From contig NIVC01002487.1 of assembly GCA_002269645.1 (NCBI GenBank), forward strand, positions 64,244 to 128,243: a stretch of 64,000 nucleotides of DNA, in the 5' to 3' direction. The notes beneath the pieces are model-generated. The model was not told the DNA's origin, searched no databases, and was given only the letters and a program-made list of their open reading frames with translations. This DNA is from Macrostomum lignano. Lineage: Eukaryota. This document shows positions 43,401-49,400 of this stretch, one piece after another (the first letter of the stretch is position 1; the number at the start of each line of letters is the position of its first letter). Made by a program: the position numbers and the translations under genes.

Positions 43401-46400
43401 GATGTCGGAAATTCAGCTTTAGAGCAGTCAGCAATTAAGTGGGAGCTCGGCTTCTGTTGGAAATCATTCAGCCACTAAAATTTATCTGCTCTTTGCAGTC
43501 ACTGGTAGTTGCTGCTTCTATTTCTCTCCGGCCAAATAACGTGCACCCTAAACCGGCTGTGCCGTTTGCTTTCAGCTTAAATTTTGCTTTCAATTATAAT
43601 TCGATAATTGTGTTCATCTCTTTGATCTATTTTTCTATTCTGACTCTAATTAATATAAAAATCTTTCTTCTGGTCCGTAGAATGTTTAGTTAGCCAAATT
43701 GCGTGTCAGTTTTACAACCAAATTTAGCACGAAAATGGTTCGATAAGCCTTATAGCTCAGTTCGGGAGTGCTTATCTCCCGATAAGCATCGGGAGACTGG
43801 CATCGTGTGGAATGGCACCCCAACTGACAAATGTGTGGAATGGAACCCCAACTGACCCTGAGTGGTATGGAACCTTAACTGACCCTGAGTGGTATGGAAC
43901 CTTAACTGACCCTGAGTGGTATGGAACCTTAACTGACCCTGAGTGGTATGGAACCCCAACTGACACTGAGTGGTATGGAACCCCAACTGACCCTGAGTGG
44001 TATGGAACCCCAACTGACCCTGAGTGGTATGGAACCCCAACTGACCCTGAGTGGTATGGAACCCCAACTGACACTGAGTGGTATGGAACCCCAACTGACA
44101 CTGAGTGGTATGGAACCCCAACTGACACTGAGTGGTATGGAACCCCAACTGACACTGAGTGGTATGGAACCCCAACTGACACTGAGTAGAATGAGTCGAT
44201 GACATCCCAACTGACATCGTGTGAAATGGCACCCCAACTGACACTGAGTGAAATGGCACCCCAACTGACAAATGTGTGGAATGACAGCCCAACTGACACT
44301 GAGCGGAATGACACCCCAACTGACACTGAGTGGAATGACACCCCAACTTACAAATGTGTGGAATGGCATCCCAACAGACATTTTACAGCACATAAAAACA
44401 AACTTAGCATTTGCTTACTTGACCACTGCTAATGCGCTTTTGGGGCACATATGCGTCGTTGGATTCTTTAGCAGTGGGTAGGATAGTCTAATTAGCTCGT
44501 ATTTATACTGCACTTAGTAGCTAATAAATCATAAATGAACATAAGTGATGTATTCCACTTGTACGAGTAGTAGTGTAAATTCACCTGTTTTTCGATTTTT
44601 TTTCAGCAACTGCATGCAACAGATTCTGGAGTCGGTAAACTACTGTCATCAGCACAACATTGTTCATCGCGATCTAAAGGTAAAATAGTTGTTAAACCGG
44701 TAAACTAATTTTTTGAATATTTCTTTATTGAAATAAATTACATGAAATGCCCTTTTATGTCTTTTATTTGTACAGTTTTAAAATATAGTTGCTTTGTGAT
44801 CAATAAAATAACTTTAATTGTAAAGATGCGTAGCTTGTTTGTTAATCTTTCTGCCTGCTTACATAGATCGCGCTCCTGTTTAAAGGAAGAAAGCAAAGAG
44901 AATTTTGATTAATATCTCAATATATATGCGCATATACGAGCTGTACTAGTAGGTAGGTAAGAGGGGATTTCTCACGCTGCAGGGATTAGAACGTTCGGGC
45001 CTCAAGACGTCTTGCTGTCCCAGTTAAACAGGAGCCACCGGCTTCCCTCTATTCCCGAAGAGCTTCGTGATGAGGGGCAAAATCCCATTTTCATTTTTTC
45101 AGCGTGTTCCTTCCGTCTTCCAGCTGTCCCCCATCTTTATCCCCCACTCCATCGTCATGGCCTCGCTTTCCTCATCTCGCGCTTCCCCCCTCCCCATTCC
45201 CCTGTCTGCTCCTGCTCCATTTTCTGCTTCCTTTCCGTGTCAGCTCATTCTGTGTTTCACCTTTCGCAACCTACCATGTTTCTCTAGCTGAGCCTCCTAG
45301 ACTCTGGCTCATTTATATATATATATATATATATAAATAGGACGAAGTCTGCAAGTTCGCGAGATTTCCTGTTCAAACAGGAGGCTCACCCATCCACCCA
45401 AAAGTAGTCTTAATCTTTCCCATTTAGCTCCGTTTCTTATAAATTTATAAATTTCTATTTATATAACCGTCTTTCATATTGCATCTCTACCGTTTCACTA
45501 CATTGTACGATGCTTTTTGTCTGCACATGTCACTGGGTCTTGATTGTTTGCAACGAGAACCCTCCCCGTTTCTGCCTGCTAGTTTTTCTGTTTCATGAAA
45601 AGTTCTTAAGCTCGTAATTTTGACTATGCTAAAAGTCGGTTGCTGCTTTTACAAGATGTTCGTAGAGTCTGCTATTCATTAGTAGAAACTTAGGTTTTTG
45701 AGCGAATAATTGTGCTGGAAAGTGTTGAAGGCTGTGTTTTTCAACTTTGTACTCGTATATTGATTTTTTTACTTACAAAATTTTAAGAGCTTTAGTCTCT
45801 ATTGGCTAATTTGTCTGACTATTGACTGACTTGCAATTTGATTGCAACTCAATAATGGCAACTATTCTGATTAAAGAATCAAGATAGCTAATTAAAGATA
45901 GGATTTAGTTGCTTATTAAAGAGCAGGTGTTCTAGTCTGGTCTTTTTTAGTTATGAACTGGGTCTGAGTGCGGTAGCTATTTAAGGTCCTAAAGTATAGT
46001 CACGATGCAGAATCGAAAAATGGAGATTTATTGCAAGTTCTTTACATCCAAGACAATTAGAAGTTCTTAAAAACCACGTCAAAAATGTTGAAACATTTAA
46101 ACAATGCATAAAAATTCTTGTATACACTCGTATAGCCAGAGAATCTGCTGTTATCAAGCAAGACAAAAGGCGCCGCTGTAAAATTGGCAGACTTTGGTCT
46201 GGCCATAGAATTACAACCGGATTTGGCTAATGATTGGTTTGGTGCGTTGCTTATATGCGTACTGATTTTCTTTTCTAAATCAAGCAGCTAGGGAATACAG
46301 CTAGCATAAATATTAACTAGTGCTCGCTAAAATTGTATTAGTTTAAGATAGAGGGTTAAGTTGAAACTAAATGCATATCATATATGCATGAAAGTTAAAT

Positions 46401-49400
46401 ATCAATTTGAAGATGCGGTCATGCCTAGTAATAAAAAATCTTAAAAAAGGTTTTTAAAAGAAAACCTTCGACACCATTTTTTGCCAGCTAGTGCCCAGAA
46501 AAAATGAAGATTTAATAATAAATGGTAGAATTTCAAATATCCAAATAATTTGGATCAAACGATCGCTTACGTTTTAATCGTAAGAGATGACAAAGAAACG
46601 CAGGGAAACAGAAAGTTTGAAAACTAGTAACCCAATAGGCATTACTCAACCCACAGCAGTATATATGAATATAAAGCATTTATACGATGGCTGGTATGGA
46701 AATGATATTTTGGGTGGATTTAGAGTCACTGACTAGTGTACACTCCTTAGATAAGCTTCATCCATCCCACGCCTCCAGGTAGAGAAATGGAAGAGTTAGC
46801 TGGGAGAGAATGGAATGGGGCCGACCTCTTTAAAGATAAGCGTCAAACATCCCACGTCCTGTTATAAAGTATATAAGGACTAATGTAATAAAATAAAATC
46901 GAATAATCCACTAATAAATAAATAACTTTCGTCACCCAATTGTATAACTTTAGAAAATATTTAGTATATGATATTTTGAATAATTGGTTACTATAGCGAC
47001 TATTTAGAATCAAATAGCTATTGCTATTGCTGGAGTGTACTAATAAAGTTGGCGAGGTTTTAGTGTGATTATAATTTCAATAAGCATGTCAAATATTAAT
47101 GATACAATTGTACACAGCCGAGTCATAATCACACGGTCCTGTTTATTAATGTACTCTGTGTGTCTACACTCTATTATCTATCTAACTATGCATCTCACGG
47201 GCATTTAATCGATGTACATATAATACAATAACTACTCAATTATTTATATATATGTACGCAGTGCCTAATATTTCTTGGCTATAAGCTTTTGTCTTGCATT
47301 TCCCTTTCCTAGTTTTATATTCACACGGCGTTTGCTTCTTTTCCTCTTGCATTTATTTACAACTAAATATCTTCTTTGCTGATCTTTCACTAACTCGGGT
47401 TAGAAAGAGTATAAAAATCTTTCTCATTTGGAAATGAGATACACAGCCGAACTAACACATGTTAGTTTGAATTTCCCTTATCTTTTTCTGTAGTCTCCCA
47501 ATAGACTTTAAATTGGATGATGATTGATTGGTGTGAACTACTGGCTTAGTACAGTACCAACTGAGCTATTCGAAAAAATAGAGTTAAATATTCCTTATGT
47601 CCGAAAAAAGAAGCTGATTAATGCACAGTAAGTTTTCGCGCTGACAAAAATAACGACATTGCTTTTTTTTACAAAAAAATAACCACTAATGCATTGTTGC
47701 ATTGCTCATGTACTATTGTCCTTTTTACATGATTGTCTTTTTGGTGGCCAATTTTTTGTTTTTTATATCATATTTGCCATGGACAAAACTCAAAAAAAAG
47801 AATCAAATCGATGTTCGAAAAATCAATCAGTGATATTTTTCATTTGTATTTCATCCTTTTGGTGTTAATAAGGCGCTACTTGATTTCAAATCGCATAAAA
47901 TTTGCATAACAGACTCTTTAATGCTGTTTTTAGCTTGCTAACTTTCGCTGTCCCGCGTTTCACTTGTTTTAGTTAGCCTCACTATAAGATGTATGAAAAT
48001 AAAACGAAAAACTTTTAGCCAGAGAATCTACTGCTGGCCAGCAAGGCCAAAGGTGCCGCTGTGAAACTGGCCGATTTCGGCCTGGCCATTGAGGTGCAGG
48101 GCGAGCAGGCTGCTTGGTATGGTACGTCCTGAGAGCTTCTGCTATGTGAACGTACGAGATATCGAATTGAAAAAGATATGTAAAAATAATGAAGCTTAAT
48201 TGTAGTTATAATTAAAATGTCGTAAGAAAGGACTTTTTTAAGTAAAGCATAAAGAAATTTTAGAATTCGTAGGTTTGTTTATCTATAGACGCTTTAAGTT
48301 TTAGCTAGTTTTTAGAAATAACAAGCCATTTTTATACCCGACGTACTTAATATTCCTATAAAAATAGTATAGGAATAATAATGAAAATAATTATTCATTA
48401 ATTATTAAAATCATGAACATAAGTTTTAATGCAGAAAAATATAAATCCATGAAACTAGCTTGTTTAATAAGGTTAGCTTTTAATTAAATTTAAAGGAATT
48501 CAGACATTTCACCACTATTCTTGTTGACTGCTGGTAAAAAACCATCAGTGTTTTATATAACAAACATATGGACGTAAAGTAGCTTGCTATTTCTACTATA
48601 AAAACTGTCACTGCAGCACGGTTTTTTATCTGCAGATGTTTAGCCTTATGAATAGTAAATATTACACCGTAAAAATAAGCGTTTGACTTTGGAATTGGCA
48701 CCTTTGAATCCCCTGTTTGATTTTTCAATTTTTGTAAAAATCACACCTCAGCTTGGATTGCTGCTTACTTGCTTGTAGTAGTATCAGTGTTTTTTGACAG
48801 TTAAAGATGTGATAATACCTCGTAGCCGCCTGACCCGCAATCAAATCCTCCAGTTTTTGTTGTTTGTCATCACTAGCCATTTATATTCTCGTAATAATTT
48901 CGAAACTACCCACCTACTAAGTTTCTGGCTTTCTTGTTCACTGGATTTTTTTTCAATTTTTGCTATGGATTTTGACTTATTGCGAGAATAACATTAACCT
49001 TTTTTCGATAACCGGAGCTTATATTAGCGTAAAATCGCGAAAATACATTTTTAAATTAGAAGTAGCAGTATTAAAGCATATTGGTTAGGGTTAAAATTTT
49101 CACCAATCCAATGATTATATCACCTATACTAAGTCAATTAATTGGGATTAGTGAATATTTCGCCTTAAGTTCTATTTCTGTTGTTTTTTGCCTGCTAACT
49201 TTTAGCTGGTATATATTAGGTTAGAATTGCTAGTAAACTATTTTAAGTTTATTTTGCTTCTTAGTTTCAGTTTTCATTCTACTGTCTTACCTAAACACTT
49301 ACTTATATTTGGGTTGGTTTGCATTCCATTTGCCAGCACGCGCCGCTTTCTTCCTATCTCAAATATAACCTATAAATATAGATAAATTACCTATTTCGTA

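Follow-up and report, generated by a model that had tools for sequence, protein, structure and literature searches.

Alternative exons for the DFG and activation-loop segment of a CaMKII gene of Macrostomum lignano: a very probable tandem-duplicated, mutually exclusive pair retained in two paralogues

The diversity of CaMKII is usually discussed in terms of its variable linker only. Classical linker splicing, as it occurs in vertebrates and Drosophila, concerns cassette exons in a disordered segment of the protein, which alter the compactness or the targeting of the holoenzyme and not its catalytic core. In human CAMK2D, a substitution that arose by tandem exon duplication lies inside the kinase domain and has been dated to chordates, and the transcripts of the pair are ENST00000342666 and ENST00000511664 (Martinez-Gomez et al. 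2022, PMC9741552). The present work concerns a stretch of 64,000 nucleotides from the flatworm Macrostomum lignano (assembly GCA_002269645.1, contig NIVC01002487.1, positions 64,244 to 128,243 of the forward strand), hereafter called the window, whose plus strand carries a complete CaMKII gene at 40414-57938 in a model built on GT-AG introns. Two exons of this gene, 6a and 6b, code for the segment that contains the DFG motif and the beginning of the activation loop, and it is very probable that they form a tandem-duplicated, mutually exclusive pair under selection. Both isoforms are already deposited in GenBank, where they stand unremarked, and our search for papers on catalytic-domain splicing of CaMKII in flatworms or molluscs, or on the M. 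lignano (Mlig) gene identifiers, found none. What is new here is the segment affected, that is, the DFG motif and activation loop of CaMKII, and the retention of the pair in two paralogues.

The vertebrate CAMK2D pair and that of Macrostomum are alike in that both consist of adjacent homologous exons of the catalytic domain, with a length not divisible by three, which are used alternatively. In the locus of a bird (L007), the vertebrate pair was located at 4147-4221 (EAVLHCHQMGVVHRDLK) and 4643-4717 (ESVNHCHLNGIVHRDLK), with 73 nt each and AG/GT splice sites. The original prediction for the window had stated that CaMKII diversity usually comes from the linker; this is right as far as the window gene also has optional linker exons, but it leaves out the kinase-domain pair of vertebrate CAMK2D (PMC9741552). 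The two systems differ in the exon concerned: the vertebrate pair is equivalent to exon 5 of the window gene (73 nt, helix alpha-E and HRDLK) and not to the exon of the DFG motif and activation loop. Since exon 6 is single in the bird and exon 5 is single in Macrostomum, these are two separate duplication events.

Duplicated exons that exclude each other are also found in the cores of other kinases, of which FYN is a further case. In JNK (MAPK8/9/10, exons 6a/6b) and p38-alpha (MAPK14), the isoforms produced by exclusive exons differ in substrate or partner preference, and in JNK an incompatibility between the U2 and U12 spliceosomes contributes to the exclusivity. MAPK8 and MAPK14 are among the tandem-duplication events described in the literature (PMC8373072). 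Unlike the pair studied here, those of JNK and p38-alpha belong to another kinase family and affect a region C-terminal to the activation loop, and the U12-type sites of JNK have no counterpart in the Macrostomum pair.

Exon 6a (46136-46241, plus strand, 106 nt; acceptor gtatag, donor gtgcgt) and exon 6b (48019-48121, plus strand, 103 nt; acceptor ttttag, donor gtacgt) both begin in phase 0 and end in phase 1. They are flanked upstream by the constitutive exon 5 (44607-44679, 73 nt), which is present in a single copy and ends with HRDLK in phase 0 and the donor gtaaaa, and downstream by the constitutive exon 7 (49558-49641, 84 nt), which begins with G/GC TTT GCT, reads GFAGTPGY and takes phase 1 from either member of the pair. 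Exon 6 covers the last part of the catalytic loop (PEN), then strands beta7-beta8 and the DFG motif, and the activation segment as far as the Trp-Phe/Tyr-Gly in front of the P+1 loop (GFAGTPGY). The 6a form has a coding sequence of 1440 nt (479 aa) and the 6b form one of 1437 nt (478 aa), both of them open; the exons themselves contribute 35 and 34 residues, respectively, plus a split Gly. The two exons are homologous, with 25 of 34 residues identical, reciprocal tblastn E-values of about 1e-13 (the range of the per-exon tblastn comparisons being 1e-13 to 1e-21), and a nucleotide difference of about 23% plus one codon indel. No second copy of any other exon of the window gene was found, 6a/6b being the only pair. 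In all of this the sequence agrees with the original prediction, which had given the coordinates of the exons, the validity of their splice sites, their phase and their place between the HRDLK and FAGTPGY exons; a recount of codons 1-25 returned the same figures, namely 23 identical residues of 25, with 11 synonymous and two non-synonymous differences.

The lengths of the two exons have a direct consequence for splicing. Because neither 106 nor 103 is divisible by three, transcripts with both exons or with neither are shifted in frame and stop early: double inclusion, as had been predicted, shifts the frame and meets an in-frame TGA at 48090-48092 (plus strand), and double skipping leads to a stop in exon 8. 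Both premature stops precede later exon junctions, and these transcripts would be removed by nonsense-mediated decay. According to this proposal, each mature mRNA would join exon 5 to 6a or to 6b, and either of these to exon 7, across U2-type GT-AG introns, and the aberrant products would be cleared. The two resulting kinases would differ only over strands beta7-beta8, the DFG motif and the first (N-terminal) half of the activation segment; the duplication would have preceded the split of two Macrostomum paralogues and would have been kept in both.

The difference between the two forms is concentrated after codon 25, in the activation loop, where 6a has one extra residue and a Pro, as the original prediction had noted. 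The loop of 6b is of the canonical CaMKII kind. The a-type loop carries a signature of its own: SKTKG contains Thr, Val is replaced by Leu, a near-invariant Gly by Pro and Glu by Asp, and there is one additional residue, which appears as a single-residue insertion in the loop when the product is compared with the structure of human CaMKII gamma (2V7O). The Gly that is replaced is conserved in at least 90% of 46 CaMKII sequences. The residues of exon 6 that are invariant across the same 46 sequences (the Asn of PEN, Trp and Gly, among others) are all kept in 6a, so that 6a should still give an active kinase, probably one with a changed loop geometry, regulation, or contacts with substrates or partners. 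The activation loop of CaMKII is not regulated by phosphorylation. AlphaFold2 models of both isoforms, built with the 46-sequence alignment, reached a mean predicted local distance difference test score (pLDDT) of 45 and 52, with the C-lobe below 50, and are of no use for or against a function of the a-type loop. Codon usage was also considered as a possible mark of 6a as a minor exon, and it gave no signal: the GC content at third codon positions (GC3) of 6a is 0.40, within the range of the other exons of the gene (0.36-0.79).

The window gene has close relatives within the M. lignano assemblies. The deposited protein PAA66834.1 (P0122, BOX15_Mlig004461g1, 478 aa) is identical to the 6b form, and PAA82550.1 (P0121, Mlig024299g1, 542 aa) contains 6a together with an extra linker exon and matches the 6a form at 100% over 72% of its length. 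The contig of the former gene (L003) has 93-99% identity with the window and that of the latter (L002) about 95%, so that the window is a further copy, or another assembly, of one recently multiplied gene. Both exons are intact in all three (window, L002 and L003), and their protein sequence is identical. Such redundancy raises the question of whether the pair could be an artefact in which haplotypes or homeologues of a single exon were placed in tandem, since a recent genome duplication has left the M. lignano assembly with high redundancy (PMC5730564). However, three independent contigs (L001, described below, L002 and L003) show the same tandem arrangement as the window, and the exons differ from each other by about 23% and a codon indel, as compared with about 5% between gene copies. 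There is next to no chance that an assembly error explains the pair.

A second CaMKII gene is represented by PAA70243.1 (P0124, Mlig005291g1), which has 88% protein identity with the window gene over 466 ungapped columns, and whose annotated loop (IELQPDQSSAWF) has 12 residues with the Pro present, as in 6a. Its locus, L001, was used to solve the exon structure, and the lengths of the kinase and regulatory exons are equal to those of the window gene. It contains an a-type exon, 6a' (L001:28063-28168, 106 nt, AG/GT), orthologous to 6a, and, 4.4 kb downstream, an unannotated b-type exon, 6b' (L001:32524-32626, 103 nt, AG/GT), orthologous to 6b, so the order 6a-6b is alike in both genes. No alignment is possible between the introns of the two genes, and matches are confined to exons. 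When a trematode and other spiralians are taken for comparison, the two Macrostomum CaMKII genes are sister to each other. A micro-exon of 9 nt in the linker of the paralogue (L001:37827-37835) is required for an exact match to PAA70243.1.

The comparison of the two genes by the Nei-Gojobori method supplies the evidence on selection. Over the kinase and regulatory region, the proportion of synonymous differences (pS) is 0.70, that is, saturated, and the proportion of non-synonymous differences (pN) is 0.036. For 6a vs 6a' the values are pS 0.92 and pN 0.11, with 29 of 35 residues identical, and for 6b vs 6b' they are pS 0.43 and pN 0.013, with 33 of 34 residues identical. A test of the dN/dS type had been called for in the original prediction; in this form it finds both exons constrained, with pN far below pS, and supports the purifying selection that had been claimed for the two copies. 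Common to the a-type exons of both genes are Thr (SKTKG), Leu, Pro and Asp, together with the extra codon and the donor gtgcgt, and the b-type exons have in common Ala, Val, Gly, Glu and the donor gtacgt; the tip of the a-type loop varies between the genes (LAND vs QSSA). The presence of both exon types in both of these saturated paralogues indicates that the exon duplication predates the gene duplication, which makes it at least as old as the split of the Macrostomum paralogues, and that purifying selection has acted on both types in both genes. The pS of the b-type exons (48019-48121 vs L001:32524-32626) is well below both the gene average and the a-type value. This probably reflects a shared preference for GC-rich codons, and it may also reflect constraint at the nucleotide level, for example by splicing enhancers.

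The age of the pair depends on the assumption that the exons of the two genes descend from one duplication. If the pairs had arisen independently, or had been homogenized by gene conversion, their co-occurrence would be uninformative on age and selection, and one comparison points in that direction: over the first 81 nt, 6a' resembles the 6b' of its own gene (69/81) more closely than the 6a of the window (61/81). However, this likeness within the paralogue arises from its uniformly high GC3 (about 0.85), and the a-type exons agree in five derived protein states, in the extra codon and in a donor hexamer of their own, where the b-type exons have the alternative states. The intact frame and the conserved catalytic residues of each 6a do not depend on a common origin. 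Independent duplication or conversion is thus quite improbable, and a single duplication that preceded the gene split is preferred.

The a-type loop has been sought in other animals with a 120-aa query, a full-length query, an a-type profile, and an exhaustive HMMER search over 1.84 billion representative sequences. Outside M. lignano this 12-residue loop of the QPD type was seen in none of 240 close CaMKII hits, in none of 96 short hits, and in none of the best 150 of the exhaustive search, in material with M. lignano as its only free-living flatworm; the sensitivity of the short queries is limited, given that they returned only short proteins and missed even PAA82550.1. Within M. lignano, the paralogue provides an orthologue of 6a; the search among other flatworms and lophotrochozoans that the original prediction had proposed found no a-type exon in the species sampled. 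At the level of gene structure, exon 6 is single at every locus examined: Schistosoma mattheei (L004), the monogenean Cichlidogyrus (L009), Capitella (L005), Lottia (L006) and the bird CAMK2D (L007). In Cichlidogyrus casuarinus (L009:2905-3162), the equivalents of exons 6 and 7, and sequence beyond them, lie in one unbroken open reading frame, without the intron that Macrostomum has after exon 6.

Support at the RNA level comes from the annotation of GCA_002269645.1, which draws on transcripts only, its sources being STAR/StringTie/TACO assemblies and a mapped de novo transcriptome, with open reading frames called by TransDecoder (PMC5730564). In each of the five GenBank CaMKII models, one and only one member of the pair is present. 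The exon map of PAA82550.1 is 5-6a-7, PAA66834.1 is of the 6b form, and the three copies of the paralogue (PAA70243.1, PAA65261.1 and PAA66584.1) are all a-type; the deposited models of the paralogue are therefore a-type, and those of the copies of the window gene are of either type. Exon 6a of the window gene differs from its own 6b and from the 6a' of the paralogue by 20-30% of nucleotides, so that these models are not confusions of mapping between exons. The claim of mutual exclusivity made in the original prediction is supported by the frame logic, the retention in the paralogue, and the single exon in each transcript-derived model.

These models also bear on the possibility that 6a is an unused or decaying pseudo-exon and that only 6b enters functional mRNA. 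Three features could be read in this way: the acceptor of 6a has a poor polypyrimidine tract, its loop is seen in no other sampled species, and the exon has evolved more quickly than the remaining parts of the kinase (pN 0.11 vs about 0.03). Nevertheless, the a-type exon is used in four of the five transcript-derived models, it keeps all the invariant catalytic residues, and between the paralogues it has remained open, of the same length, and 83% identical in protein at a saturated synonymous divergence. In a neutral simulation with a per-site divergence of 30-70%, at least 29 of 35 identical residues were obtained in 0 of 20,000 trials. The pseudo-exon is strongly disfavoured and must be considered very improbable, and the notion of two functional exons under selection is maintained.

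Several points weigh against this notion all the same. The support from RNA is indirect, as it comes through deposited transcript-derived models, and reads are multi-mapped over copies that are about 95% identical, so the assignment of isoforms to copies is uncertain. The a-type loop was found in no other species, in a sample with M. lignano as its only free-living flatworm. In addition, three UniRef entries based on an older assembly, A0A1I8GVS1 (P0123), A0A1I8GSY4 (P0241) and A0A1I8GC06 (P0125), show 6a fused to 6b.

The fused entries deserve attention because they define a way in which the exons might not be strictly exclusive. They read ANDWF and then the sequence of 6b, with the frame intact, which is achieved through the AG inside CCAG/AG at 48019-48022; the first 4 nt of 6b are lost and the segment from beta7 to DFG is doubled. 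However, these are products of gene prediction on the older assembly, one of them (P0125) with further aberrant junctions, and the fusion is found in none of the transcript-derived GenBank models. A protein with a doubled beta7-DFG segment within the kinase core is also unlikely to fold. The fusions are probably artefacts of the gene predictor caused by the exclusive pair itself, and a genuine in-frame product of 6a and truncated 6b has little probability. There is a lesson for annotation here, since automated prediction merged both exons into one aberrant UniProt protein. Strict alternation of 6a and 6b is retained as the preferred description.

How the exclusivity could be enforced is a separate matter. 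Steric hindrance, which acts when the intron is roughly shorter than 60 nt from donor to branch point, is ruled out, as 1777 nt of intron separate 6a from 6b in the window gene and 4355 nt separate their counterparts in the paralogue. No U12-type donor (/RTATCCTT) is present at the flanking introns, whose donors are gtaaaa (exon 5), gtgcgt (6a) and gtacgt (6b) and whose acceptors are all AG. A different kind of mechanism, known from exon 6 of insect Dscam1 and from 14-3-3 zeta, relies on a docking site that pairs in competition with several selector sequences. A possible likeness to these systems in the window is a single element between 6a and 6b, with the core AGAGUUAGC, which is complementary to a flanking motif that occurs three times. 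This candidate docking site is purine-rich and lies at 46784-46813 on the plus strand, with its core AGAGTTAGC at 46792-46800; it is complementary to 45569-45594, 47937-47945 and 49181-49203. The corresponding candidate selectors, also on the plus strand, are at 45571-45587 in intron 5, upstream of 6a (TCTGCCTGCTAGTTTTT), at 47930-47946, 73 nt upstream of the acceptor of 6b (TTAGCTTGCTAACTTTC), and at 49187-49203 in the intron between 6b and 7 (TTTGCCTGCTAACTTTT). With up to three mismatches, the selector 17-mer TTTGCCTGCTAACTTTT occurs three times in the 64 kb, always on the plus strand and always in the introns that flank 6a and 6b, for an expected count of 0.41 with the self-match included. 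The 9-mer GCTAACTYT and its complement have no other occurrence in the 64 kb.

Unlike the insect systems, the pairing in Macrostomum is short, unspecific and without conservation in the paralogue, where the docking and selector motifs are absent. The docking candidate pairs about equally well with some ten other pyrimidine-rich sites of the window; the ungapped pairing score is marginal for one pair (2 of 60 shuffles) and not above shuffles for the other partner, and no compensatory changes are seen among the few substitutions that distinguish the copies. Scans for inverted repeats returned mostly AT-rich pairings at the level of chance. Competing RNA pairing as the basis of the exclusivity is therefore put forward as a possible lead and not as a finding. 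The paralogue contains an inverted repeat of 20 nt with 85% complementarity, which joins a site in intron 5 (L001:26740-26759) to the b-type 3' splice site (L001:32510-32529); only two other such pairs occur in 11 kb, and the chance that an arm overlaps a splice site is, by a rough estimate, about 0.09. The b-type exon of L001 is skipped in all three annotated models of the paralogue.

Duplication within the catalytic core of CaMKII is also seen at exon 5 in other spiralians. The 73-nt exon is doubled in Capitella (L005:13891-13963 and 14115-14187) and in Lottia (L006:21304-21378 and 22171-22245), and RefSeq isoforms of Octopus (e.g., P0147 vs P0132), Haliotis and Argopecten contain one version of exon 5 or the other. 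These doublets are like the Macrostomum pair in being tandem exons of the catalytic core of a spiralian CaMKII, here of 73 nt, and unlike it in that exon 6 is single at the Capitella and Lottia loci. No paper on the annelid and mollusc doublet was found. The vertebrate and spiralian versions of exon 5 have 19-20 of 25 residues identical in all combinations, which does not discriminate orthology. The doublets thus raise the alternative of a bilaterian origin or of convergence, and the identities do not decide between them.

The rest of the window gene has the expected organization of a CaMKII, with a kinase domain, a regulatory segment, a linker and a hub in 17 coding exons on the plus strand, 6a and 6b included and the optional linker exon at 55164-55352 not counted. 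The GT-AG model places exon 1 at 40414-40466, exon 2 at 41804-41958, exon 3 at 42662-42716 and exon 4 at 42811-42876, upstream of the exons already described, and exon 8 at 49753-49847, exon 9 at 49962-50084, exon 10 at 51733-51816 and exon 11 at 52052-52094 downstream of them; a linker exon (54452-54553) and four hub exons (56708-57938) follow. The translation shows all of the catalytic motifs: GxGxxG, the VAIK-type Lys, HRDLKPEN, DFG and GTPGY. Exons 10-11 code for the autophosphorylation site MHRQET and for the calmodulin-binding sequence, both of which align to solved CaMKII structures, and the translated gene can be aligned from one end to the other with human CaMKII gamma (2V7O) at an E-value of 1e-176. 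The database proteins PAA82550.1 and PAA66834.1 are both annotated with PF00069 and, for the hub, with PF08332 (CaMKII_AD). As in the classical systems, the linker has an optional exon, that of 189 nt at 55164-55352, which is included in PAA82550.1 and not in PAA66834.1; it codes for a stretch rich in poly-Gly/Ala-Ser and has an alternative acceptor inside, near 55257.

Upstream of the gene, minisatellite arrays with periods of 21-39 nt are densely packed between 22000 and 36721 of the window. An example is a 21-mer repeated in 200 copies at 29782-33875, and the GC skew reaches 0.72. The copy numbers in the window are unlike those of the sister contig L003.

Taken as a whole, the pair shows a single CaMKII gene that would exchange the segment from the DFG motif to the activation loop in a family whose diversity has been sought in the linker. 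It is conceivable that the a-type exon provides a functionally distinct activation segment and not a neutral variant, that mixed dodecamers form through the common hub, and that the ratio of 6a to 6b in each cell type, possibly set by competing intronic RNA pairings, tunes the threshold, trans-autophosphorylation or the choice of substrates; with the exon-5 doublets, tuning by catalytic-core splicing would then be a repeatedly evolved and general layer of CaMKII. This extended proposal is tentative, and we regard it as unlikely in its entirety. On a narrower basis, the doubling of exon 5 in annelids, molluscs and vertebrate CAMK2D suggests that splicing of the catalytic core is wider in CaMKII than has been recognized. 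For the enzyme itself, the Macrostomum pair amounts to a natural experiment on the role of the CaMKII activation loop, in which a Gly conserved in at least 90% of sequences has been replaced and the replacement appears to have been kept by selection in two paralogues, and the availability of transgenesis and RNA interference in M. lignano makes isoform-specific tests of that role feasible.

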